Positions 1,488-49,160 of a DNA stretch of 64,000 nt are shown here, one piece after another. The stretch's first letter is position 1. Each line of letters begins with the position of its first letter. Location: contig OU015569.1 in the NCBI GenBank assembly GCA_907165135.1, positions 3,348,001-3,412,000 of the forward strand, given 5' to 3'. Below the pieces are notes generated by a model. The model was not told the DNA's origin. It saw only the letters and a program-made list of their open reading frames with translations, and did no database searches. A program made the position numbers and the translations under genes. The DNA comes from Oikopleura dioica. Its lineage: Eukaryota; Animalia; Chordata.

Positions 1488-4400
1488 TTATTTCTTTTCC
1501 CTGACTATCTTCATCGACTGCCAAGATCATCTGATTATCAACTCGTTGCCCTACTTGTGTTTGACAATTTTCAATGACAGCTGGAAATCCTTCGCCACTT
1601 CTAGTCATGAATGATCGGAATCGTAATGGGTCATTGACATCTCTTACGCGCATCGTACAAACTGTCTCAACTGGCTTTGCATCTTTTGCCTTTGAGTTGT
1701 GAAGACGGACATTGAGATTGACGATTCTAGCAGCGACGGAGCCGCGGGTTTCAATCTGTGCTCCAGGAAGTTCGTAGTTGTATGGTTTGAGAATGTTGAC
1801 TTTTCCTGAAGTCACCCAAACTCCATCAACTCGCTCGATAGTAGGAACAATTTCAAGCGAACCGTCAAGAGGATCTTCACTGTCCAGTACTTCAATCTCA
1901 ACAAACCCGTTTCTTTCGTCGGCGTCACGATCAACAATTCGAATGTTAGCAGCTTCAGGAGCGTCCATGCTATTTTCATCAATTATTCCAAGGTCACAAC
2001 TCTCAACTTCTGGTGGTTGATTGCACATGTAAATAATTACTTTTTGAGGATTACGATTAATTTCAATCCGAAAAAATCCCCAAAAGGACCGGAGAATTCC
2101 TGGTATTATAAATACCTCTTCTAGGAATAAAGATATGTGAGGCAGAACATACTTGTCGCATATGTGCGCAGATATGAAAAAGATTATCTCAATTGACTGA
2201 TCCTCTCCTTGAGCTGAACGCGACCCGTAAATTGGATTGCCTGGATGATCACGTACGCCGACTTCGATGGATAATTCGCGAACCTTATTGTTTATTCTTG
2301 GATCGAAAGCACTGACACTTATGGTTCCATCCGCATCCAGTCGGAAAATATTTTGAATCTCTTCCACTCTACCGTCGTAGTAACGAACAAGGACCGGCGA
2401 TCCAAAGGGCTTTCGATGAGTGAAGAAAAATTCAACTTTTCCATAAGCTCCAATGTCCATATCTGAGCCCGATAGTTTTCCAATTTTGGTACCCACTTTC
2501 ATATCCGGACAGTAAGTCATGCTCAGACTGTGGGGATCAAGCCAGGGGATGTGATCGTTGATATCACAGACGTCGATTTTTATATTTCGCGAAGCAATTT
2601 CATCTCCGGCGCAATTAAAAGCTCGGACTGTAATTTCATGAACATCTTCTTTTTCTCTGTCAAGAAATTTCTTCAGAGCAATCTGTGCGCGTTTTCCAGC
2701 AACAGTATCTGCATTCGAAATCCCAAAGAGTTCATTTTCATCAATACTATATGAGCAAGTTTGATCTGTGTCGAAATAAACTTCAGGTAGGTCGCCTTTG
2801 TAGAATCGATCTTCGAGGGAAACCCCTTCGCAGATTCGAATGGGCTGACAGTTGTGCCACTCGCCGACGACCGGGCGCACTGCTGGCCGGATGGTAACGC
2901 GAGGAACAGGCGCTTCTTCATGTCTCACCGGTGCATAGATTTGGTTAGCCTAAAGAGGTAGTTAATTGCTGTCTATGCAGAGCGTTCGAAGAATAGAAAT
3001 GTCAGTGGTAATCTAGCTTTGTCAAAACCATGGGTTGAAATATGAGTTTTTACGGAGCGATCGTTTCCCTAACGATCGATATTATGCTAAAACATTCGAT
3101 AGAAATAACGTACCCCCCCCCCCTAGCTCGCTCACATTTTGTGAACATTTTTCCCTTACTCGCTTAGTTAAACTCCAACAAGACCCCCCTTGGTCGCTCG
3201 CTTTTTGTTACCAAGATCCGTTGGTCGCTTTCCTTCTTTTGCATTCTACGACCCCTTGTTCGCTCTCCTTGGTTTCGACGGCGCACCTTTGCTCGCCCGC
3301 ATTTCTCCGTCATTTATCCCTTGTTCGCTCTTGAAGCCCCTTGAAGCTTTATGACGCGTAGCTCATTTTCTTTTTCACTTTTAAAAGGCTTTTTAACTTT
3401 GATTTTCATGATTTTTTCCAAGCAAACTTATCTTTTTATGCTCTTTCACGCCCACTTTGTCAAATTTTCATATCTTCTTAATAAGAAGAAATTTGGACAC
3501 TCCATTTTAAGTAAACATAAGTACTCGAAATACTAAGATTGAAACTTTGAGACTTTTTTTATGAAAAATCAAATGCCTTTTTCCTCAAAATTCATTTATT
3601 GAGATTTCTCGAAAGAATTGACGGATAAATCTAGGTTAATAGTGTATCCCTATTTTTCACCTCAAAATCATATTCATATCTTTCGGGTCAGGTGAGATTA
3701 TTTGTTTTTGACAGAAGAAATGAAATTATCACGTAGTCATTTTGTATATGGGAAAAATAGTGTTCAAATTACTGTTTTGAAAATTGCAGGGTTACACTAC
3801 CCGCTCAATCCACAGTACATAGAACGCTAGAGTGAAATAATAGATACGTTTGGGGGGATTTTCGCGGCGTTTGTTAAAAGAACCAGTCAGAGTTGCAAAT
3901 TTTGATTAATTTTTCTGAGCTGAGCTGAGCTGACCCGAGAAAAAATTTCTCTGAGCTGAGCTGGGCTACTTCGGAGGTTTCTGAGCTGAGCTGAGCTGAG
4001 CAGACCTTTTGTTAAAGAGAGTTGAGCTGAGCTGAGCTGAGCGGACCCTAATTAGAGCTGAGCTGAGCTGATTGAGCTGAGCTGAGCTGTTTTTTACTGT
4101 TTAAAGGGTTTACAGTAAAATTGTATTCAAATCATTGAGCTGAGCTGAGCTTAGCTAAGTGATAATCGTCTGAGCTGAGCTGAGTGAAAATTGTCTGAGC
4201 TGAGCTGAGCTGAGCAGATCAGATCATTTTCCAAAATCACTGAGCTGAGCTGAGCTGAGCGACTGCTCAGCTCACTCAGCCAGCTCAGCTCACTCAGCTC
4301 AGCAAATTTACAACTCTGGAACCATTTTCAACATGAAGATCCGACTATTTTGAGTAAAAATGTACATATAAAGTCACACTATCAAGTTTACGGCATAATA

Positions 4401-18978: not shown

Positions 18979-20344
18979 TCAATCAGAACTCGCGAAAAGC
19001 GGTAAAAGTAAACAGAACTTCCAATTACAAGCTCGGAGAATATAAACGTACGATTATAATTTTTGTAAATATTTTAAACGCGCGCCTTGCGAAATTGCTT
19101 CTTCGGAGTAGATTATCTCCCGCCAGAGCTCCTCCCTTAGCCAAGCAAAGAATTTATTTACTAGTGGAAAATGTCAATTTGGCGAGATAGAAATAGTTAG
19201 TGTGTACTATTGTTAGTAAGCTTCTTTGGCGAGGTGCTAATCAGGCTGAGGCTCGAGTGTCGGATATTCCGGCTCTATCTTATCCGACAACCTTATTTGG
19301 GAATGGACAGCGCGTACTTGAGAATACTTCCGTTGCGGGGTGCCGTAGCGCTCTATTCTAGTTCCAAATTTTAAAGAGTTGCTCATCGCCCTTCAAAAAT
19401 ATAAATGAAGCTGATTATTTTTTTTGATTTTATTTTCACATATGATAATTGAGTGTTTGTGGTGATTGAGTGAAGTAACAATAACTGTATGTATGTGTTT
19501 AGTTATACTGTCATTTTGTTTTGTTGTGAAAATATCATTTTTTGTATGGTGGCAGAAGATTGAAACGAGCGTGATTTGGCGTCGAGATCAGAAATTTACA
19601 TAAAATTGAAATTGCATAGATTGAAAAGTTGAAAGCAGGAAAAATAATAACGATTAAAATGGATAACGGTATTGTTTTGTGAAGCTGGCCACGTGATTTG
19701 GGCACAACCGTGGTTCCGGGCAGAGAGCAGAGTTTCGATTTTTCGAAACGAGTTAAGTTCGGGCACAGAGTTAAAAATGTTCGAGCTCACACAATTGCTT
19801 AGTTAAGCGCCTCTCCAGTGTTCGGCATTTAGTTACAAATATATAAAAGTTTCAGTCAATTGGTGACAGATCAAATGGTACATCGGGCAAGAACGGCGCG
19901 GCACACGGTTTTGTACTTAGTTAAGTTAGGGTCGACAAGTTTTGGCGGTGCCACGCCGAGCTGCGACTTCAACTCAAAAAGCTAAAATCGCAAAAGGCCC
20001 ATTTTTGAGAGAGTAGTTACTGATAAGTGAGCTGGTTACTGGAGGGCTTGGACGTTTTTTTGTGTTTTAGGAACATAGTGCACCGTATTTGTAAACTTGG
20101 TTGGTTGAGGCAGAACTTGGTTCGAAGCAGACAGACTCACTTGCTGCAAAGTCGGGACTGGTAGTCGTGGTACTCTCACTGCTGCCTAAAGATGATCATA
20201 ATTTTTGCACGCGAGAAGCAAAATGGATAAGAATCATGAGATGCCACTGATTTGCGACTTGTGAATGATGAAAATTCTACTCACTTATAATGGGGAACAT
20301 TTGGATGAATAGTGGTGGTGGTTTTGTTTGTGTTGAGGTGATGT

Positions 20345-23300
20345 TCACAACAAACCTGGCTGTAACGCCGAGCTCACTGTCGATTCCTGCGAAGTGGGCG
20401 TCGTCGCCGCGGTGGGGAGCGAGGCGAGGGGGGATGCGTACGCAGAGGCGCCGTACTGCGGGTAGCCGGGATAACTCGACAGTCCACCTCTGGACGGAGA
20501 AGCACCGCCGTATGCTGCTGCAGAAGCGGCGGCAGCTCCATAAGGATATTGGTAAGGATTCACCGTTCCATAAGGCGTCGGGTAGCCACCAGTAGATGTG
20601 GGGAAGCCAGGTGGTCGAGAAGTTCCGAAGAGTCCAAGTGGGTAGCTGCCGGGGCACATTCCTTGCGTTGTGAGTTCCAAATGCTTGTCTTGCTGAAGGC
20701 GCTTCATCTTGTATCGCTTGTTCTGGAACCAGATCTTCACTTGCTGCGAAGTCAGGTTGAGCATTTGCGCGAGCTGATCACGCTCGGGTGCGGAGAGGTA
20801 TCGTTGTTGTTTGAATCGTCGCTCCAGCTCGAACACTTGCGCCTAGAAGTGCTTAATAAGCGACCGGCTTCTTTTGAGAGTTAATTAGTACCTGACTGAA
20901 GAGTACGCGCGGCTTGCGACGGTTTCGCGGCGTTTGCGATTCGGAGTCATCCCCAGAGTCGCGACCGGACTGGTTGCCTTCGGTGTCTTTGTCGTCTGAA
21001 AAGCAAGATTAGCGAAGGAATGCATGTTTGAAAGAAAGTCGGAAAGGGCATGTTAAAATGGGGAAAACAAATTTCCGAACGCGAGCACTTTACCCGTGCA
21101 TGTTAGTATCCGCAATTGCGCGAGGCGATTGAAACAAATCGCGCCACTCAGTAAACCCTAATCAACACCAGTGCTTAATTTCTAAACATGTAAAAATACT
21201 TGAAACTGTACATCTATTTCTCTTTCTCCCTGGAATTTATGAATTTGGCAGCGGCGTGAAAATGCGCTCTAATCAACGCTGGGTCAGATTCTAGGGCTAT
21301 TGTACCTGAAGTGGTCGACGGGGAGGGCTCCTTTTTCGGCTCATAGTTGTAATTTTCGGTCAAGTGTGCGAAATATGCGCTCGGGTTTACTGTGTACTGG
21401 TGGTCTAATAGGCTCATCTCTAGGTAGGTAAGGTCAGCTCACGTCAAGTGTGTTGAGAGGGAATCCCAAGTGGATCTAATGAGGCCCTAGATTGTCAGTC
21501 TGGCTCTTAGGCGAGATGCACCGAACAGCGCCTCGCGCGGCCTTACAGTATGCGCGATCCGCGGAGCGTACCGCGGCGCGCCATCACCCGACAAGCACTT
21601 AAATGCATTGCCCTAATGCAACTCCGTTAACGATACGGGAGAGTGAGTCTCAGACGATCTGACGCCCGACGATCCCGGAGGACGATAATGAAGCTAAACA
21701 ATGATTCTCGTGTTCATTCTCTAGACAGATAACACCACAATTTGTAAACAAACTCCGAACTCCCACTCATGAAAATTAAAAGCTTATCATTACTTTCTCA
21801 TTTGATAAATTGTTGTATTCGCTTGATAGATGTTGTTTGCAGAATAATAGGCCTTTCTCGATTTTCTCCTATCCTTGAGATTTGTTCTACTTACGCAAGA
21901 GAAGTAAGATGGGAGCGTAAATAAGTGGTAGTGATTCAAAATTATGAAAAATTCACTTCTTGAGGTTTATGGAACGTGCTTCACAAATTACGCAGCAGGT
22001 GATAATTAGTTCCTCAGTGAGGGTCCTTCATTCAATCGAGAGAGCTCACTTTACCCGAGCTCAGACTTTTATCTAGGGTCCTTAACATTCGTGCTCAATA
22101 CCCTTGAGAAGAGCTCAACACGTCGGATTTCCGCTGCGTACTCTTACGTGAGCCCAAATTCTACTATTAATTATAGGCAAGTCATTGAGCCGGATAAGTA
22201 CTCTATTCTGAATCCACACACAGTCCTAGATAAGGCTCGCAGGAGTCCTTGTTTCAGCTTATCTCCGTGATTGGGTTCAATTTGCCTTTCTACATTCAGA
22301 AGCTCTTTCCCGTGTCTTCCAGAATGCGTGTGTGCCCAGACTGTCGTTTCCCATGCGCGACTCACAATAATCGCATTTGGGCACAGTTTCTATTCAATCA
22401 AATTCACATTCGGGGGCACGAAAAATAGGCCCGTCGAACAAAAGCTCCACTGATAGCCCTTTTCAACACCCCTGCCGCATTACAATTTCGAATCCTTATC
22501 AGTAAACGCTAAGCACCCGCTGCGAGCAGCGTATGTGCCCAACACGGTCAAAATAGACTTAGCGCAGGCTGACAGGGGATACAGAAGCTTCAGGTCAAGA
22601 AATTATTGTTCCCTTCCAAAAGCTCTTATCTAATCATCTAGCTGTAATCCGCTGACGAATTCAGATAATTTGGGCGAGCAGGTCGAGCGCAAGTTTTAGC
22701 TCTGGGAGGCGAAAGTGTGCGATAAGGGGACTTATGGGGATTACGCTGGTCAAGTAAAACCGTGCGGCTCAACCGAGTTTTATCGAGCAAGACGATCGGC
22801 TCCACTGTGTTTAGACGAAGGCGACAGTTTACAGTTTGTTGCTCCTCGCCACGAGCGCAGTCCTGCTGATAAGAGATTACAGTCGCGATTTTGGGACTAA
22901 CGAGCTCATGTTTCTCCTCGCTATCTACTCAGAAGGCCGTGTGAAAAAGTCAACACTTCAGGAGAAAACGCCTCACAGGTTTTATTTTCGTCGTTTCACT
23001 GAGTAAGGCTAATATTTACATTCTAGTGTTTATCTGCCAGGAACGGAGTGCAAGTGCCTGCGCGCTTTCATCTTTCAGATTCGATGTTCCGGCATCTTAG
23101 TTACTAAAAATGTCTGCGGGTAAGGAGCTACCCCGCGGCCAGCAACCTTGGCAAATCGGAAGAAGGGAATGGGGAATGGTTTTACCGAGTGAGTCGGATT
23201 CAAGTGGCGGTTACTGATGCGGCCCTTGTGGCACTTGAGTGTGTCTGTTTAGGCGCTTTCCCATCAAACGAGCAATGTCGTTTTTGATTTCGCTACTCGC

Positions 23301-26300
23301 GTTTTGATTCCTCGCCCTTCCCAATCTGCTGTTGGTTTTAGCCCGGCCATAAACGTCACCAAATGCACAAACAGGTTGATCCGGAGCATGATCCTGATTT
23401 TGATCAATCGAGTGGCTGTTTACGCTGGAGACAGCAGCGCTCCAAAATTATAATCGTAAACGCGCTCTCACGCTCGTGCCACTAACACACAAACAATTAA
23501 TAAAAATTTCACGCACCGCAAAATACAAGTGATCGCAGATACTGATATCAGCAGCGAAAGTGCAGATCAAAATTCACAGATAGATGATCGTACGAAAGTC
23601 TGATGGTCAAAATTGTAATGAAAAAAGAGGGATCGCAGAGATATAAGCCAGAATTTGAATATAAACCTATGAATTGATATTAGTTCAATAACTGATAAAG
23701 GAAAGCCAAAATAGAAGACGAAGGAAATTGTTCCTCAGCGCGAGCGAAAAAAAGCGGTGAGGCCGGCTGGTGTTCTGGACGGCGGACATTAGGCGGATTA
23801 GCGTTTTTTTCCTGAGACTTAATTTTTTGAAACTGATTCTGAAAACTCAAGTACCCGACTCGGCACTGATCAATGGATCAAGTCTGTGTGCTCGACTGAG
23901 CCCATTCTTCGGTAGAACGGCGCCACAGTCGAAACACTAGAATGATAAATGCTACGACCCGGTCGGTGCGGCTCGGGTGCGCACTCGAACCTAGCGTGAG
24001 GTTTCATGATCGATGCTGGGCTCACTATCACAGGGAAGGGCACTTGAGATTTTACCATCTTTGGAGTTTCGTTTACGTTTCGACATGAGAGCATCTTTTC
24101 TAACAACTATCATTAACCCGTATTTTTCCTGTATTATAAGAGCTAAACATCGAGAAGGAAATATACCTGGCGGAGGTTCTCAAGGGAAATTAGCACAATT
24201 TTATAAAGCTTCCGTTTAGCAAAGTTTTTCAAATCGTGTCATTCAATATCTTGAGAGTCAAAAATTCGTCTCGATTACGACTGAGAACTGTGCATTTCCG
24301 CGTTTATTTTTAAACACTTTGCAACTGAGAAAGCATGCACGTTAAATCTCCCTCGCACATTTATATTGTTACGATAATAGGATGATGATATGAACAAGCA
24401 GCGAGAGTAAGTGTTTATGCTTTGTTTTTAAGATGCTGCTGGTACAAATAATTAACACTTAGCTCGGCGCAACGTTGATCAACTTTGTCGTTCGGCAGGT
24501 GAGTGCCCGGAAGTACCCACTCAGCTAGCCACTCGATACCCGATCGATGCACCGGTTGCTACCTATACCCTACCCATAGCGTTATGTTATCAATACAACT
24601 CTAAAACTGTATTCTAAAAAAGTTCTATTGTAAGAAGACGCCCTAAAAATTTTCGGCTCTTGTTTCGATAACGTCAAAATGTGTTAATTAGTATCCGGCG
24701 AGTGGCGGAATGAGCACCTTTACTATCGGTAGTCCAACTTCTTTCCTCTGCCAGACGATTTATCTCTTCTCTTGAAACTGCATTGTTCTAGCTTTTTTTT
24801 CAAAAAAAAGTGAATCATACTCTTCGAAGTGCAAAGTGAGTTGCACTTGCAAGAAGCCTCCTTGAGAGCTCTTATTCCGATAACGCTTCATTTGAGTCCT
24901 TTCTCTCTCAAACTAAGTACCTTATTCTTAAAGCACATCTCGTGTCTAAGTCGTGTAATAAGCTAAACACATTTATGAGAGCGTTATAAGATAGGTACAT
25001 CCGCTCCAGACTGACACAGTGGAACTCTTAACTTTTGCATTTCCACTTCCATAAGTCCGTCCAAAATACGCTCGCTGAGGTGGCCCGCTTTCGGAGGATC
25101 GAAATTCAGATGCAAACAATGCCAACAAGAGAACAAGAGCGCAAGTTGCTTAGCTCCTTGAATTAGGTCGTCAAAGGCTACAGCGTAATCCACATTCGAA
25201 ACGTTATTTCAAAATGTTTGACTTCAATAAGTAGCGATCAAACACTTCTTTTAATAAAATGAGCTACTCGTTATGAAACTTGGTGAATCTCAGAAAATGG
25301 CAAGGAGATAAGAGAAGAGTGCCCATTTGTATGCAAGAGGAGGGAACAGCGAATGTATATGGCTTTGATAATTGATGGGATCTGTATTTGATAGGAGAAG
25401 AGCTTGTGGATAGCGAAAGACGGCGGATAGCACCAACAGCACCAAAATAACCACTTTTACTCGGCACTTGAGTTTCAAGCAGATCAAAACAAACTGGCTA
25501 AGCGAGCGCTAGGGGCGCAATATCCTCCGACCGGTGAGCTCCAGCATCGCCGCTCTAGAAGTGCCAAGCGACCACAGAGAGATACGAAATAATCGATCGT
25601 ATCAGTCTTCGAGTGCTTATTTGACCGCAACAATTAACTGATAACGGCTTATTAATATAGGCACCTAGCTTCTTTGTGGCGCTCTACCGTAAATACACCG
25701 ATCGACCGCGATTTTCCCAGCGCGGATTAAACCCCTCCATAAACCCACAAGTGCTCCACTTGACTTATTCCACCACCCGGTTTAAAGTATCAGATATAGA
25801 AACTTTCTAGCCTCACCAGTCTCGATTCGTGAGATAGAAATCTAAGCGAACGTTGAATTTTAAAATTTTCAAACTATTCTGATTAAAGAAATGCGAAAGA
25901 ATCTCGAGTGGTCAAGAAGGAAAGCTTTGATAAAAGGATCATCTTTTGCTCATCCACAGACCTCAACATAAGGTCGAAGATTATTAGAATTTAACTTTCA
26001 GCGGGAATATAAAGGCGAATAAGCGGCCCTAAGAGAAACTTAATTACAAAGTGGGCTAGATGAAAAGTTAAAAACTCGAAAATTAAAAAATCGCCCGTTT
26101 GGTGGTGCCGTGGCGCCTCGGCTAGCTCCACCACCACGGCCGGAAAATAGTTGAAAACAGCGATAACAACGCCCCCTACGGCAGAGTCGCACCACAAATG
26201 CGCCTTCGTGTAAAAATATGTGGATTCTCAAGTGGGTACATTTTAATCGCTCCGCCAGTTTTGGCGCTCTCTCCTCGGACGCACCACCAATCAGCAGCCA

Positions 26301-29209
26301 CTCTACCACTTTAGATTCACTTCATATGCTGAATATTCACAAGTGCTCCTGACCAGCCAAGTGTATACCAACGAATAATTTTAGATGATGGCTTTGTAGC
26401 CAGCACTTAGATACACCGGTATATGCCGGTTTATTTTCATGCAGTATTCACTAAGATGCACTCTTGCCGCTTCCTGAAACAAAAAATCTGCTAACTATTT
26501 CGTTCTTGAAAACGTGATATGCCAAAAAGAGGTGCGAAGTTTTGTTAATGTTAATTCTTATAACGTGACGGTTTCATATGATTCTTCCATTACTCTTAAT
26601 TTCATGATGATAATCGTTACATTCTTCAGTGAGACTTTGGAATGTTAGGATTACGGTTATGTTAGTTCCTTTATGAATTCAGAAGAGGGGCGGCATCACT
26701 CTCGGGGCACTTAGTTCGGGTATCCTCACTTCACCTTGTATCCACCTGGGCATGAATAAAGCAAAGTAGACGGCAGCTCAACCAACGCTTTGGGCCACTT
26801 AGACGCCGTGTCAGGTCCTTAACCCTCGACCCGCCCTGTTACGATAACGTCATCGCGTAATCTCTTCACGATCTCGCTTCTAAATGCGTTTCTTTCTTCT
26901 CCGAAGGTAGCGTGTGATTTCCGGGGACTTCGTTAACCCCTTGACGTTCACGTAGCCATCTCCGCAGCTACGCCGGTTATGGCATTTTAATTGAACCGTC
27001 GAGCCCAGCGGTGATATAAGAAAGCGGCTCTAAGTAGCCGTCGTTCACTTTGCCGATTGCCAGGTCAAGTGCCACTGGAACACATCACCGCGCGCGCACG
27101 CACAGACCAACCGACACTCCCACTCATTCACCACTCACTCAATAACCAACAAATCAAGAAAATTCTAGCACCCAACTTCTAGTTCTCTATGAAACGCATA
27201 TTACGTTAGTAACAGTCCCGTTTTTATTGACCTTTCTTTAGAAAATTATCTTTCTTTTTTGAATTCAAAAACCCAACCAGTAATATTTAACTACTATTCA
27301 TAAAATGAAAAGAGGCTTCACTATGAAAATCAACATAATCTATGTGGCGTAGTGCATTTGTTGCAGAGCAACGAAAATACTTTTAGAAGTTCAATGTTCT
27401 ATAAAAAGTAAAATTCGCGAATGAGCAATGAGTGTGAATTAACCCGTTGCGCCCTCAATCGAGCAAACATTTCAAAAAAGTGTCGCGTGTTTTCTAAACT
27501 CGCTGTGTTGTCTAGTAGACAAGTTGATATATGTATAGGATGCTTGAATTATTGGTGGCTGCTTTTGGCTGCAGAATAATGAAATATGTAAACTGAGTTG
27601 TAAATAAAATAGTCAAAACAGAGATGGCTTTGGCACTAGTGTCGTTTCAAGTGGTCGGCGCTTAGGCACACTTGAGAGGCAAATTTTTAATACTCAGCCT
27701 CTCTACTCTGAATGAAGAATTAATAATTTCCAGTGAATCATTAATGCTCTTAGCAGTTATTATTTTACACTACTTTTTCTACGAACTGTTCTTCCTCTTT
27801 TGCTTTCATGGCAATTTTTCTTTCGAGTTTGTGACTCGAAAAATTCTCTCGCGAGGGAGAGTTTTTAGAAAAGATATCAAAAAGTAAGTCTGTGAGGCAC
27901 CGAGAAAGTATTAAAGTATTAATATTGAGCTTGAATAACGGAGAAAACATGGTGAAATCTACCGGCGCGACAGAAGGGATACTGTTCGTCATCAATATTG
28001 CAAGCTATCAAAAATAAAGAATTAATCTAAAACTTCTTGGAAAGGAGGATTCGCACCTCGTCTTACGTTGATTTGACATGCTCAGCGTGATCTTGTTTTA
28101 ATGAAAATTTGAAATTATCACTTTTCTTATTCCCAAAAGAGGAAAGAAAAAGTTGAGCCCCGGGTAAAACCTTAAATTTCGCCCCTGCCAAAAAGCACTT
28201 GAGAATGCGCCCTCGTGCGGATTAGAGCTTCAAAACGTCAATTCCAAAACAAATTACCCGAAAATCGGAAGCTTAAAAAACGAGCCCAGTACATAAGATG
28301 CCCAGAATGAGCGAAAAATAGAACATTCATGTAAACTAGTGAAGACATTTTTCTGATCTCTAAAAAGACGTGTTCTCGGTCTTCTAGCACTGTCTGCTCC
28401 GTCAAAATAATGTCTCCAAAGTCAAATAGAACAGTGGCAGGGCACTTGAGTCGAGTGACAGTAAGCGCACTGCTCATCCCCACCCTTGCCGACGATCTCT
28501 TTGTTATGTTCTAACACGGTTTAGCGCTTACCTCCGTTTTCAGAAAGCCTCTCTTGCTTCGTACTTTCGGACTCAACACCTTCGGCCTCTGTCTTGGTCG
28601 TTTCGTTTAGCAGAGTCATCTCTTGTATTTTCGGACTTGTGCTGGGAGCTGTACCGTTTTCCGTGTTGGTGCCGTTTTCGCCACCGCCAAACGTAGAGCT
28701 CGGCGTCGGACTTTCGAAGCTCAGAGATGTCGGAAAGTTTTCATAAGCGCCGTTTGGATACGAGCTGGGAGCGTAATTATTGTAAAAGCCCATCGAGTAG
28801 AGAGAGCTATCGCGATCTCCCTGTCCCGAAATTAGGTCCTTGACTGTAAACGGGTGTCCGGAAATGCCTTTGAGAGAAGGTTCAACGTGTAAAACTACGA
28901 GCGCATTCATCGCCCTCAGCGTCTACCACCGGGATGCGTTATTTTGGAGGGTTTCGCCTCTCTAGCTGGATTTGGAGATTTCAAACCGGAGCCGACCGCC
29001 ACCCGGTTGGATGAATTCTCAAGTGGTTAGACTACGCCCCGAAGTGAGCAACTCAACGGCCCTCAACTCAACTCTCGGCTCTAGCAACATGCTAGTAAGA
29101 GTGATAAAAGAAACAAAAGAAAGAAAGTAAGTTGAACCTTGCCTAACGTTCCCGCGGCAGCCGCCGCTGCTGCAGCAGCAGCAGCCCCAGCAGCTCCAGC
29201 CGAGAACAT
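20345..29209 (-). CDS. NK4: NK4 (Nkx2-3/5/6, tinman-type) homeobox protein, 5-exon model
   Basis: complement(join(20345-20842,20892-20995,21306-21419,28532-28867,29143-29209)) is in frame. Homeodomain [57 protein letters not shown] with Tyr54, then DKHLEL and a Tyr-rich tail. TN/eh1 motif HPFTVKDLI in the distal exon. The homeodomain exons are secure; the distal exons are inferred from phase and motif. Confidence 0.85.
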
Positions 29210-32200
29210 ACTCGGCGGGAGATCTGAGGCTATACTCTCTTCTTTGGTGGCGCTTATCGTTGCAATTTTGACGATCAGGCTTTCCTCTTCCTTCAGTTTC
29301 GTCTTCGTTACTCTCTATATTTTTCTTCGCAGCTTGAGTGATTCTTATCCTCGGATCTCTAGGTTTCTTTGAGTATCTGTGCTTGTTGCCCTTAGGGGAG
29401 TGGCTGCTTATCTCTTCCACTGATGTTGTACTGCTGTTGAAAATGAGTGATGCTCTCGTCCTTCGTATGTAACCGAGCGTTCCTTCTATCCCTGCGGCCG
29501 AGAGGGGCGACGGGGGTAGCTCAATTTGCCTAAAGCCTAGCTCTGGCGCTCCAACCGACCGGCGCTACACCGCGCTACCGCGATCCTATACACAACACCG
29601 CCGCCGCCAACACTCAGATACACTCACCTACTGTCCTTGATATAAGAAGAAAACAAGTAAATCCAATAGAAATCCATCTTTTTGACCCCTCCTTCGTTTA
29701 CTCGAGCCGTTCTCTTCGTTGATTTCAATATTGAATAAACAAGAAAGAATGGGGCCGTTTGTCATTCTTAATTATGATTATAAATATTTCTGAAAGCAAA
29801 TGGTTCTCGTATACAAGAGCTGATCCATAGATTAAGAAATCTATTTGGGGTTTGAAAATTTCAGTTCGAACAATATAAAACGCCACAGCGTTACAAAGAC
29901 ATCTTTGCAAGTAGCTGGGATGTGAATCTTCTAAAATGAAGAGTAGACCGTTCTGAGCAGTCTGTCTTCTGCAACTTTTAACCAGATAAACGAGCTCTAA
30001 CCGGTAAGACGAGTTATTTGTGATGCGCATTAGGCGATGTGTGCCACTCCAAAAAGGGCGTAATTCAAGTGAGTTCAAAGTAGAGAAGCTGCTCAATTGA
30101 ACAAAGTGCCGATATCTTCGCACCCTTATCTTCATTATTTAAGAACCAAAATAAATATCATTCTTTTTATTTAATATCAGCAATTTTTCGGCACTTCGGG
30201 ATAAACGTTGGCACATTGATCTTCTTATTCAAAATTCACGCTAGGAAAACTTCAATACCAACCAAGTATTTAATAACAGTAGTAGGAAAGGTGCAGCAAA
30301 GAAAACCTCCATCAATTGATAATTAACAAATTGCAATTAATATTGCAGCAGCGAAGATTTTGATTACAGAGTGCTTCCAAAGCTCCGAGATTCAAGAAAA
30401 TCGCTAATTTTGGGAATTATTGATAAGAAATGGTAGTGCCTGCCCTACTTCCACACAACTTTTACCGAATCACGAAAGAAAACTCCCTGAATTCTTCAGA
30501 CAATCATATTATTAGATCGCAATCCAACAAATAGAAAAATGAAAACATTACTAGTTAACAAAGGTGTTCTCATATGATACGAACAATTCACTTGTTCAGC
30601 AACTGGTTTAATGAGTTCTACGGCTATTTCTTTTTGTCCCAAGTATTGGAAGACACAAATGGCTTTGCTCATGAAATTCGGAATTAGAAAGCACAAAGGA
30701 AGCCGGCAAAGAACGAGTGCCCAATCGAACAAAATTAGAAATTTTGGAAACAGAGAAAATTTCTAGTGCAGGAGGCTCGAAATTACTAGTTGATTAGTTA
30801 GTTGATTTGGAGCTAGACGAAGTAGTGGCCAGCCCGTCGAGAGGCCCTCCAAAGAGCACTCGAAGCACGGAGCCGAGTTAAGTGCCCTGAAACGCCAAAA
30901 CAGAAATCGCAAAAACGCAACTTTCTCCTCCAGATCTACGCTCGATTCTTATCAATCAACTTCAATTTCTGCTCCTCCTTTGGCTATTTAGCAAGCAAAC
31001 AATAACCATAATATAAGCACATTTCATTAACCAGCATTTAACAAATTATGCTTCATGACTATGTAACATAGTCTATGTTTCTCTCGACTTTTTGGGAACT
31101 GAACTGACTGTAAAAGGTTTACTACGATGAATTTAGAAATCTGTTTTTTTTCTCTCTTAGGTTTCCCGTGCCAGTGGTACTATTTAGTATAGAAAGAAAA
31201 AAATGAAGAAGCCAAAGATATTGTGATGGCGACAGGGGATGATTGGTGAACGGCAGAAAGAAGAGATTGTTATAACAGAAATCGAGCCTGAGTGGGTGCT
31301 TGAGTGGGTGATGGAAGAGCGAAGTTCGATGGGAACACACGTGACAGCGAACACTCAGCCTCTTCAAGAGAAATTTACGCTGAAATCATTTTCAGGAAAT
31401 CTCGATCGCCAATGTCGCTCAACAGCGGGCGAAGAACAGATCGAGAATCTGTTCTGGGGAGGGGCTCAACTCAAGAGTGCCTCATTTATTATTCCTTTTG
31501 TTACCCTCAGGAATTTTGAAGAAAATCGAAAAAATTGCAACGAAAATTCCAGTCTCGTTTCAACTTCTTACGCGTCTCGTTCGACTTGTGCCAAGATTTG
31601 TAAATTGTTTTTTGTCTGGCGATGATTAGCTCAAATAAATGTATATTTTTTCTTTAGAATTTCTACGCTTCTTGCTAGAATTCACCTAGAGGAGAATCGT
31701 GCAAGCATCAATCTTGCGTAAAGAAACAAAATTTTAATCGAAATATTCAAGTGGCGGTGGATGTTATCATCAAGTGGATGCTCCTTCTTCTCCTTCCCAC
31801 AGACGCAGCGAGAGTCTAATCACAAACTTTCAAATTTTGTTGCTGGTTTATCCATTCTCCTTTTAAGCCGGTGAAATATAAGTCCACTTGAGACCCTTTT
31901 TAAAAATCTGGAAAAGGTGGAATTTCGCCGCTTTTTTAAATCTTTATTTTTCGAGGGTTTCAAAAGGGGATTATTTCTGTTTTTATGAGAATTTTATTAT
32001 TGAAAAACAGAATTGTTTTATTTTTAATATTTTTTTTTCTGGTCGATGCTCTTTGCTTATTCTTCTTTTGTCTCTACTTCAACTCTACTGGATGATGTTT
32101 TGGGTTAAAATAGACCTAGCCGGAGTACCGAACAGATGCAAAATTAGCACTGGAAAGTACTTGAGTCTCTGTTTTCGGTTTTCGACGTTTTGGAATAATT

Positions 32201-34000
32201 CGGGAACTATTTTGGTTTGTCCAAGTGTCTCGAGTGCCACGCTGCCTCTCAAAAAGGAACATAAAATTGATAATAGCCTGAACCTGCTTATCGAAAATTA
32301 CCTGTGCCAAGCAGATCAATTTGTTTTTACTCGCAAAGAATCATTGAATCCTTCTCTATTACATTTCATATTTCCCCTTGGCAAATAAAATTATCAAACG
32401 AAAAGTTCCACGGGACGATATCTTCTGTCTCTTTCAGTCTCCTCATTGACTGTTTCTTCCGCTATGCACTTTGTGGTGCTCTTCTTCGTTCCTGAATTTT
32501 TACAGAACCGAAACATCTGCAACTGCCGATGATCAACCAAATCAGACAACACGGAACCAACATCCCAACCAATAGCGACACATAAAGAATTACGATCAGA
32601 AAAAACGGAAGTGAAGCAGTAGAAGATCGCCTTTTGACTCGTAATTAAAAATAAATGTCATTTAGGGAATCATAGGCGATATAAGAATATTTCTATGATA
32701 TTATACTTTGAAATGGCGTTCCCAGAGTTTTTAAATTTCAACTCTAGACGGGCACTAAAACTCTTCCCATCGTTTCCGCTGCTAGGTAGATTGGGAAAGC
32801 GAGGAAACTTTGCGAAGAGGGGAAAATTTATTTCTTCGCGCAAGTGTCCTCGCTAGCACCGCCGTCGATGTTTTCATGGTGAAGTGGTGGCGGCGCGAAA
32901 TTTCGCAGCTTGGCTGCTTCGCCAATCTCAAATATTTTCTTTTCGTTTTGAAAGGCGGCTGCTCTGACGCCAACCCATCAATTAAAACCACACACACTTA
33001 GTGGCTCTAATTCTCAGCTCCTTCCAGTACATTTACCGGTTCTTCAAGTCAGTTGAAGGGAAATGCACTTGGTATCTCTTCTCGATGTGTACTACTTTTT
33101 AAAGGGTCGACGAAGCGAGAGTCCGATGTGCTTTAATCTTAGCAGTGGGTGGTTTGGAGGGAGCTTATCGTTATTTCAGTGAAGTGTTTTATCATGCTAA
33201 TGCGGATGAAGCGAGCGACAAAGCCCCAATATCGATTTTTACTCTATAATTGAGGCTAATAACACGATGTTGAGATCGAACATATCAGTATCCGTTTCGG
33301 GACAAAGGATGTTTTTTCCTACTGGAAAGGGATGTTCAAAGTCGGCGCCACTTGAAAATGGATTTTGATTGGCCGCTGCCCAGGCAGAGAGAGACACCCA
33401 GTGGCACTTGGCTTATCCGCTCGGCGGGGCACTTTTGCCTTCCCAAATATTATTACACGAATCTTTTTGATTATCAAACTCGAGTGCAATAAAATCAAAT
33501 AGAAGCAACTTTCTATTTATTATCGTGTCTACAGCGACAGCCTTGAAAAAGCAAGCCTCTCAAGAGGACTTAATGTTATTGACTTGCAATATGAATATTC
33601 GAATTTGTTCCGTGTTCGTTGCTGCTGGTGCACAATGGTGTTTGTGTGGGGGTACTTAGCCAAGTGTGCGTTTCCAAAGGCATAAAGAATGAATTTTTGA
33701 GAAATCGGCGACGACTCTCTTGAATCTCTGAATTTCGACGCCGGATGTGGCAAACCCATACCTCCCCAGAACAAAGGGCTAAATCTAAAATAGCCTCACA
33801 GATACACATTCAGTCTCTGCAATCATGAAACGCACTAGAATCATGTTGGCAGCTCCACATTTTAAAGTTGAATTTGAAAATTGCTATTTTCGTTGAAGGT
33901 GAGAATTAATCTTTCTCGAGTTTAGAGAGATAGAAATCCAAATAGCGATTCCGGTCGAGATCGACAAGTGGCTTGTTTCAAGTGGACTGCAATTTTCTCG
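21420..34000. promoter_or_regulatory. NK4 cis-regulatory landscape (long intron plus upstream region) rich in NK2-class sites
   Basis: At least 19 exact TCAAGTG/CACTTGA plus many CAAGTG/CACTT variants; largely free of recognisable genes. Confidence 0.65.
32116..32640 (-). CDS. Possible small single-pass membrane protein
   Basis: Hydrophobic open segment LPFFLIVILYVSLLVGMLVPCCLIWLIIGSCRCF followed by charged segments; start not found. Confidence 0.3.
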
Positions 34001-48566: not shown

Positions 48567-49160
48567 GATGAAATTAAAAAACTTTTTGCAGCAGAAATTT
48601 CGACTTGTCGATTTTTTTAGCTCAGTAGAAAGAGCGAGAAATTCTGAGTTGAATCCACTTTCCCATGAGGAAAATTTTCTAGAGAATGACGTCACAAATG
48701 ACGTCATAAAGTACCAAAAACCGAAAACTTTGAGTCGGTTTTTGAAAGCCTTTCCGATGGATATTTCAAGTGTTCTATGGGTCAAATAGAAGCTTAGAAG
48801 AAAATGAAGGTCCATTTTAGATGATTTTCAGAAAATTTCAAAAAAAATTGGCTCTAGAATTTTTTGAAAAAAAATTTTTTTCTAAAATAAAAAATATCAA
48901 AAATGAACCTTAAATTTTTTATAAGCTTTCATTTGAGCTATTTCACGTCGAAAATAACAAACTGAAACGCATCTAAAAAGTGACTCAAAGTTTGCCCAAA
49001 ATGACCATTTTTGCGGTCTTCTCAGGTCCTCTGTGACGTCATCGTCTGGTATTTTTCGCTCAAATTTTGACAGATCGAATCAGAATTTTCCGGGCTTTCT
49101 TTAGAGCCCAAAAAATGAATGGGTCAATTTTTTTGCTGCAAAAAGTTTTTTAATTTCATC
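48567..49160. mobile_element. Foldback/MITE-like element
   Basis: 27-bp perfect IR GATGAAATTAAAAAACTTTTTGCAGCA (48567-48593 / 49134-49160), plus inner IRs (AAACTTTGAGTC, TGACGTCA). Confidence 0.55.

Follow-up and report, generated by a model that had tools for sequence, protein, structure and literature searches.

The Nk4 locus

The window considered in this study is a 64-kb stretch of Oikopleura dioica DNA (contig OU015569.1, positions 3,348,001 to 3,412,000 of the forward strand), and all coordinates given below are positions within it unless another contig is named. It contains Nk4, an NK2-class homeobox gene read from the minus strand, whose long intron and 5′ flank carry a dense cluster of the heptamer TCAAGTG (CACTTGA on the opposite strand). 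The annotated protein P0001 (O. dioica OKI2018_I69, XSR, g14197.t2) is identical to the window over the exons that it includes, the homeodomain exon among them, which identifies the window as Okinawa-lineage O. dioica, in agreement with the species supposed in the initial annotation. Appendicularian-type orthologues were found by searching marine metagenome assemblies with the homeodomain exon; their tails end in LQ(P/T)GLL and have no NK2-specific domain (NK2-SD). Two of them lie on long contigs that were used for comparison, L001 (80% amino acid identity) and L006 (78% within the conserved part; L007-L011 are near-identical haplotypes of it). The gene model is as follows.

28532 to 28910, minus strand: exon with the TN/eh1 motif, from an open reading frame (ORF) with a GTAAG donor at 28531-28530, phase 1
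21420 to 28531, minus strand: long intron of 7,112 nt holding 12 of the 20 clustered sites, its junction predicted from the frame and GT-AG ends
21306 to 21419, minus strand: exon, the first one of the annotated model P0001, from the reading frame and the P0001 match
20892 to 20995, minus strand: exon ending in the N-terminal arm of the homeodomain, from the reading frame and the P0001 match
20354 to 20842, minus strand: exon with homeodomain residues 11-60 (including Tyr54) and a Pro/Gly/Tyr-rich tail without NK2-SD
20070 to 20156, minus strand: last coding exon, with the C-terminus of P0001, from the P0001 match

We infer the splice from the TN exon to 21419 from the phase-1 GTAAG donor, the matching AG acceptor and the retention of the TN-exon peptide elsewhere. 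The coding sequence of this exon is conserved in P0121-P0124 and in L006, and the TN (eh1-like) motif that it contains is conserved in L006 as well. Further upstream, a poly-alanine ORF on the minus strand (~29208-29140) is followed by GCAAG, a possible GC donor, and L006 has a poly-alanine run (~2540-2640) in frame directly before MHPFTVKDL. The true start codon of Nk4 may therefore lie near 29208, with a first intron of ~270 nt.

The homeodomain (Pfam Homeodomain match, 4e-17) keeps I47, Q50, N51 and Y54 together with the N-terminal arm RRKPRVLF, and its recognition helix differs from that of human NKX2-5 only at R52K and S56M. Its nearest named relatives are Nkx-2.5, Nkx2.7 and Nkx2.3, and the nearest solved structures are the homeodomains of NKX2-5 (the best PDB match), NKX2.1 and vnd, in line with the naming of the gene as NK4 in the initial annotation. 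Position 52 of the homeodomain is a lysine (QNKRYK) in all appendicularian Nk4 proteins (P0001-P0008) and an arginine in the other NK2 proteins that the search returned. A 49-nt intron interrupts the homeodomain between residues 10 and 11 (after RVLFSQ; window 20892-20842), and an intron is found at the same place in L001 and L006. Neither the window ORF nor any of the appendicularian orthologues P0001-P0008 has the NK2-SD (VAVPVLVRDGKPC), which is present in the non-appendicularian matches P0012, P0015, P0017, P0024 and P0044. Its absence weakens the assignment to NK4, which was made by best matches, without excluding it, as Drosophila Tinman is not known to have an NK2-SD either. A single Nk4 has been reported in the literature for O. 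dioica.

Enrichment of TCAAGTG in the Nk4 domain

An exact count on both strands gave 24 copies of TCAAGTG in the window, compared with a mean of 9.3 ± 2.8 and a maximum of 18 in 100 dinucleotide shuffles of the whole window. Twenty of them lie between 21360 and 33984. The initial annotation had listed 19, each of which was recovered at its coordinate, and had missed the one at 21360; in the same way, the three copies it had reported elsewhere (14441, 45652 and 55381) are real and are joined by a fourth at 48766. Given the cluster's own composition, 1.8 (order-1 Markov model) to 2.4 (order-2) copies are expected in these ~12.7 kb (P ~1e-14 to 1e-12). The local excess claimed earlier is real and had been slightly understated. 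The 51.3 kb outside the cluster contain their 4 copies where 7.8-8.3 would be expected. Models of order 3 and 4 trained on the cluster raise the expected number to 4.9 and 10.2, but were not treated as a fair null, since training on this sequence teaches them the very motif under test.

The same word emerged when the cluster was compared with the rest of the window without any prior choice of motif. Among all 8,192 words in the scan TCAAGTG ranks first, being the most enriched 7-mer (20/4, P 4e-11), while CAAGTG leads the 6-mers and CCACTTGA the 8-mers (10/0). The form TCAAGTGG occurs 10 times in the cluster, where 0.5 are expected, and never in the other 51 kb. In 2-kb bins, there are 2-4 sites in each bin between 20 and 34 kb and at most one in any of the others. 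The individual sites and the conserved blocks that include or adjoin them are listed here.

21360 to 21366, plus strand: TCAAGTG in the coding exon, within the codons for AHLT of YFAHLTENY
21444 to 21450, plus strand: TCAAGTG at the 3′ end of the long intron, with a second core CCAAGTGG 22 nt off
23200 to 23238: inverted pair TCAAGTGG ... GCACTTGA (23200 plus, 23232 minus), long intron
24041 to 24047, minus strand: TCAAGTGCCC, long intron
25465 to 25471, minus strand: TCAAGTGCC, long intron
25748 to 25763: palindromic double site ACAAGTG-CTC-CACTTGA (strong site 25757, minus), long intron
26228 to 26234, plus strand: CTCAAGTGG, long intron
26673 to 26786, minus strand: conserved non-coding block shared with L001 (1323-1436), with a conserved CTAAGTGC
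27065 to 27071, plus strand: TCAAGTGCC, long intron
27635 to 27759, minus strand: conserved non-coding block from the L001 alignment, with the inverted pair 27647 (plus)/27669 (minus)
28196 to 28202, minus strand: CTCAAGTGC, long intron
28443 to 28449, minus strand: CTCAAGTGCCC, 5′ end of the long intron
29019 to 29025, plus strand: CTCAAGTGG, within the 5′ leader or a short first intron, 109 nt upstream of the ATG in the TN exon
30065 to 30071, plus strand: TCAAGTG, 5′ flank
30857 to 30907, minus strand: conserved upstream block shared with L006 (1209-1260)
31747 to 31776, plus strand: direct pair TCAAGTGG ... TCAAGTGG, 23 nt apart, 5′ flank
31885 to 31891, minus strand: CTCAAGTGG, 5′ flank
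33349 to 33355, minus strand: TCAAGTGG, 5′ flank
33965 to 33984, plus strand: tandem ACAAGTGG + TCAAGTGG (site 33978), distal edge of the cluster

Under the gene model, 12 sites are intronic, one (21360) is coding, one (29019, which would fall within the short first intron if the start codon is near 29208) lies just upstream of the TN exon, and the other six lie further upstream. The sites end where the non-coding domain of Nk4 ends, this domain of ~12.6 kb being made up of ~5 kb of 5′ flank and the 7.1-kb intron. The neighbouring genes are ordinary: a WDR62-like WD40 gene, CFAP20 and a small zinc-finger ORF. The close pairs that had been pointed out at first are real, two of them inverted (23200/23232 and 27647/27669) and one direct (31747/31770); the palindromic arrangement at 25748-25763 and the direct one at 33965/33978 are further cases of close spacing. 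Over all CAAGTG cores, 7 gaps between neighbours measure 35 nt or less, compared with 3.0 expected (P 0.02).

The possibility that the sites are functionless, reflecting a compositional quirk, decayed repeats or chance, draws on the fact that the background comes from a single window of the genome. Against it stand the significance that remains after composition is accounted for (P ~1e-12), the first rank among the 8,192 words and the lack of any repeat family. An origin from repeats was rejected, since the repeat search gave only chance pairs of 18-31 nt, and the flanks of the 20 sites are mutually unrelated. A scan of 20-35.5 kb with Rfam found no RNA family. The sites are divided between the strands (11 plus, 9 minus) and seven of them lie upstream of the TN exon, which argues that they act on DNA rather than RNA. 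The cluster is thus neither a repeat nor an RNA-level motif. Outside the cluster, the k-mer statistics of the window are dominated by CTCAGCTCAG-type tandem arrays, found at 338-566 and 3981-4209 in opposite orientation.

Identity of the enriched word

Among the 21 single-base variants of TCAAGTG, a mild excess is seen only for TCGAGTG, CCAAGTG and TGAAGTG, and there is none for TTAAGTG. The base preceding CAAGTG in the cluster is T in 20 cases, versus A, C and G in 5, 6 and 3, respectively. When the sites of the three lineages (window, L001 and L006) are pooled, the preference extends to both flanks: A is found at position -1 in 1 of 44 sites (P ~2e-6), and G at position +8 in 23 of 44 (P ~3e-6). 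The high-affinity NK element (NKE) used for NKX2-5 in reporter constructs is CTCAAGTGG (PMC4671672), and the classic site for NKX2.1 in the promoter of rat thyroglobulin is GTCAAGTG. The extended word (C/T/G)TCAAGTG(G/C) is an exact match to these published high-affinity NK2 elements, and the identification of the motif as an NK2 element made in the initial annotation is borne out by both.

Since CAAGTG formally conforms to CANNTG, and Hand1/2 is retained and cardiac in O. dioica, the word could in principle belong to an unrelated factor, either a basic helix-loop-helix protein on an E-box-like CACTTG or a nuclear receptor on TCAAGG-type half-sites. However, the enrichment is not that of an E-box cluster, as it depends on the asymmetric T before CAAGTG and favours G at +8, and neither the canonical E-boxes CATCTG, CAGCTG and CACGTG nor YCAAGGYCA are enriched in the cluster. 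Together with the exact agreement of the extended word with published NK2 elements, this makes an unrelated factor improbable. No significant enrichment was found for the sites of the cardiac companions GATA, T-box, MEF2, CArG, Ets, Smad, Fox, Tcf and TEAD; that of GATA is marginal (46 versus 31.6 expected) and limited to the window.

Comparison with other loci

The non-coding DNA of the window, L001 and L006 is nearly unalignable from one to another. Despite this, L006 contains 17 copies of TCAAGTG in 15.4 kb, compared with 3.6 expected (P 3e-7), and 8 copies of TCAAGTGG, compared with 0.7. Their layout is that of the window, with 5 sites within 2.5 kb upstream of its TN exon, 9 in a 6.3-kb intron and 1 in the orthologous coding exon. 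In L001, whose locus is AT-richer, TCAAGTGG occurs 5 times (0.4 expected, P 4e-5) and CAAGTGG is the most over-represented 7-mer. A protein search with the TN exon returned short contigs only, none of them carrying the 5′ flank of the L001 lineage. Low-complexity words aside, no k-mer shared by the three loci ranks above the NK2 word. That two diverged appendicularian lineages retain the excess, and that a few sites are footprinted, favours function. An independent excess in lineages with unalignable non-coding DNA, and sites kept while their spacers diverged, speak further against functionless sites, an explanation that we regard as extremely improbable.

Three footprinted sites were found, and the few short blocks that can be aligned contain sites of the cluster. 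The inverted pair 27647/27669 has its counterpart in L001 in TCTTAAGTG + CCACTTGAAA, with the same spacing and a wholly different 15-nt spacer. In the upstream block, the window has AGTTAAGTGCCC where L006 has AGTCAAGTGCCC, which corresponds to the T(C/T)AAGTG interchange tolerated by NK2 homeodomains. The block at 26673-26786 is the third and retains CTAAGTGC. Apart from these, site 27065 has a weak collinear match to an L006 site at 3565. The coding site at 21360 is conserved in both L001 (8135) and L006 (9360), for which coding constraint may account.

Near-identical double sites, ACAAGTGCTCCACTTGA and ACAAGTGCCCCCACTTGA, are found at 25748-25763 of the window and at 5793-5809 of L006, both ~2.76 kb from the TN exon. 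Their flanks are unalignable between the two loci, and the likeness may reflect either an old site pair or convergence. A metagenome match to the 21-nt core of the conserved block was discarded as a single chance match on an unrelated contig of 28% GC.

At three non-appendicularian NK2.5-like loci, whose proteins have the NK2-SD, no excess was found within ±10 kb (3/3.6, 1/2.4 and 0/1.4 observed/expected). This indicates that such an array is not a general property of NK4 loci.

A second dispersed word was observed in L006, and also in L001. In L006:1-9800, the palindrome ACCGGT, mostly as (A/G)ACCGGT(C/T), occurs 15 times with unrelated flanks, compared with 2.6 expected. In the window, 5 of the 13 copies fall in the cluster (24551, 25530, 26415, 30000 and 33035), which is not significant. 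The word resembles the Grainyhead/CP2 consensus AACCGGTT, and Nk4 is also expressed in the ventral epidermis.

Regulatory interpretation

According to the expression study of O. dioica, Nk4 is the first cardiac factor to be turned on in the first cardiac precursor B8.12, at the birth of that cell. Its onset there is independent of Gata4/5/6, now lost, of FoxF, for which the cardiac precursor shows no expression, and of FGF and BMP; cardiac expression fades by mid-tailbud and returns in the myocardium, and the ventral epidermis expresses the gene too. The loss of Mesp and Gata4/5/6, which the initial annotation had brought up, agrees with the Oikopleura literature. Published work on O. dioica leaves the activating input of Nk4 open, and the Oikopleura cardiopharyngeal study contains no discussion of Nk4 cis-regulation or autoregulation.

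The excess is real, specific to one word, confined to the Nk4 domain, not derived from repeats, without strand bias and kept in diverged lineages, and the comparison shows, at the level of sequence, that selection maintains a high-affinity NK2 element in many copies across the non-coding domain of Nk4 in appendicularians. These are probably bound by an NK2-class homeodomain, most likely that of Nk4 itself. NK2 homeodomains contact their bases through the N-terminal arm and residues I47, Q50, N51 and Y54, and Nk4 is the simplest candidate binder because it keeps both this arm and the base-contact positions of the recognition helix. The reading we favour, and to which we give about even weight, is that the domain would be a homotypic cluster of high-affinity NK2 elements, (C)TCAAGTG(G/C), kept by selection and mediating direct autoregulation of Nk4. 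The Nk4 product would bind the elements in its own locus and feed back directly on Nk4 transcription.

As to the sign of the feedback, we lean towards a positive one, since a cooperative, switch-like response would be expected from sites that are numerous, strong and in part paired. Such a switch could convert a short-lived lineage cue into the immediate Nk4 onset of the first cardiac precursor with no need for Mesp, Gata4/5/6, FoxF, FGF or BMP. The TN/eh1 motif of Nk4, of the Groucho-recruiting kind, and the transience of cardiac expression would suit a negative sign. The qualifier "strong" that had been attached to autoregulation goes beyond what can be read from the DNA. In a negative loop, Nk4 sitting on the array would recruit Groucho through this motif and shut off its own gene, giving a short cardiac pulse. 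This would suit the presence and conservation of the motif, the fading of the first-precursor expression with a second wave later, and the ability of Tinman/NK-4 to repress with Groucho (given as reference 46 of PMC3542182). On the other hand, the sites themselves give no sign, Nk4 expression persists in the ventral epidermis, and the NK2 self-loops that can be cited are maintenance loops (vnd), so that negative autoregulation appears quite unlikely.

The main rival to direct autoregulation is cross-regulation, in which the elements would be read mainly by another NK2-class factor, such as the Nkx2.1 of the endostyle or pharynx, turning Nk4 on in some tissue or keeping it off elsewhere. TCAAGTG is both the NKX2.1 site of thyroglobulin and the NKE of NKX2-5, its specificity being common to the NK2 class; nkx2.1 is expressed in the O. 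dioica endostyle; and Drosophila Tinman heavily occupies NK motifs at its paralogue vnd (PMC3542182). However, in three lineages it is Nk4's own locus that carries the cluster, autoregulation is known for NK2 genes with dense sites of their own type (vnd), and no Nkx2.1-dependent pattern of Nk4 has been reported in the expression study. We consider it unlikely that cross-regulation is the main role of the sites, although the two modes of regulation are compatible with each other.

Several observations weigh against Nk4 autoregulation, or add nothing to it. The Nkx2.1 present in the endostyle should read the same word, and the fading of Nk4 by mid-tailbud is unexpected under a simple positive loop that locks. 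Only ~4-6 of the 20 sites fall in alignable blocks, and TCAAGTG itself is in weaker excess in L001 (7 versus 2.0 expected, P 0.005), a contig without the 5′ flank. The background for TCAAGTG density was taken from this window and six other loci. Among the L006-L011 haplotypes, 0.7% of the columns vary and none of the 98 motif columns does, a comparison without power. In two DNA runs that are ~1.4% diverged from the window and cover 24001-30000, none of the 40 variants listed (up to 26490) fell in the four motifs of that part, where 0.45 would be expected, which gives no power at all. An oligo-dT RNA run that bears the label of this species was uninformative: it yielded 49 reads that are 88-99% alike to the window, 48 of which continue into unlike sequence. 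A literature search found no O. dioica paper using the assay for transposase-accessible chromatin with sequencing (ATAC-seq).

The reads of the RNA run are confined to intronic and leader blocks (26601-27200, 27401-27800, 28201-28400 and 28601-29400), nearly all of them fit only in part, and none gives evidence of splicing. They look like reads from another O. dioica lineage that shares only the conserved non-coding blocks, and may equally well represent nascent RNA, enhancer RNA or DNA carry-over. The consensus of one loose end keeps GCACTTGAGA at site 28196.

Comparison with known systems

Nk4 is activated in O. dioica without the regulators used by ascidians and vertebrates, and a conserved array of its own word that fills the locus offers a concrete, testable hypothesis for the onset or maintenance of the cardiac kernel after these losses. 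A system for comparison within the tunicates is the intronic cardiopharyngeal (trunk ventral cell, TVC) enhancer of Ciona Nk4/Nkx2-5, for which a reporter assay and a CRISPR deletion have been published (PMC6952182). Gene family and subphylum are the same, and this enhancer is likewise located in an intron of Nk4. However, the Ciona enhancer is described as relying on conserved Fox and GATA sites (PMC6952182), whereas in the O. dioica cluster neither is clearly enriched and NK2 words dominate; O. dioica also differs in having lost Gata4/5/6 and in not expressing FoxF in the cardiac precursor. A speculative extension, which we hold to be unlikely as it stands, is that the locus was rewired in appendicularians when Mesp, Ets1/2a and Gata4/5/6 were lost, the ancestral Fox/GATA intronic enhancer (as in Ciona) being replaced by a locus-wide carpet of high-affinity NK2 sites that would make Nk4 a self-igniting and self-sustaining switch, for which a brief lineage cue would suffice. 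If true, this would explain the immediate onset of Nk4 in the first cardiac precursor independently of FGF and BMP, and would provide a concrete cis-regulatory mechanism behind the "cardiopharyngeal deconstruction".

With the NKE of NKX2-5 and the NKX2.1 site of thyroglobulin, the cluster shares the same word and the same flanks (C/T/G at -1, G/C at +8). Those elements are used singly or as synthetic 3x arrays in target promoters, whereas here a natural array of at least 20 copies lies in the factor's own locus. Other NK2 self-loops are found in the distal enhancer of C. elegans ceh-22, in the tinD enhancer of tinman, and at the mammalian Nkx2-1 and Nkx2-5 loci. In these, the NK2 factor binds one or a few own sites in a compact enhancer of the gene itself, while in O. 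dioica they carpet the whole locus.

A further likeness is to Drosophila vnd/NK-2, also an NK2-class homeobox gene flanked by dense T(C/T)AAGTG sites of its own class. The vnd region has dense NK2-type sites and is among the most Tinman-occupied of the fly genome, which was read as vnd autoregulation (PMC3542182), and autoregulation of vnd through NK motifs is attributed to Saunders et al. 1998 and to Wang et al. 2002 through their citation in PMC3542182. The two differ in that vnd is an NK2.2-type paralogue from another phylum; in O. dioica the sites are moreover distributed evenly across all 12.6 kb of the domain, the intron among them. Dense NK2 sites at an NK2 gene are therefore already known from vnd, and Nk4 of O. 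dioica adds a lineage-specific case, as well as an example of selection on the number of binding sites amid near-total sequence turnover in a genome that is among the fastest-evolving and most compact of animals.

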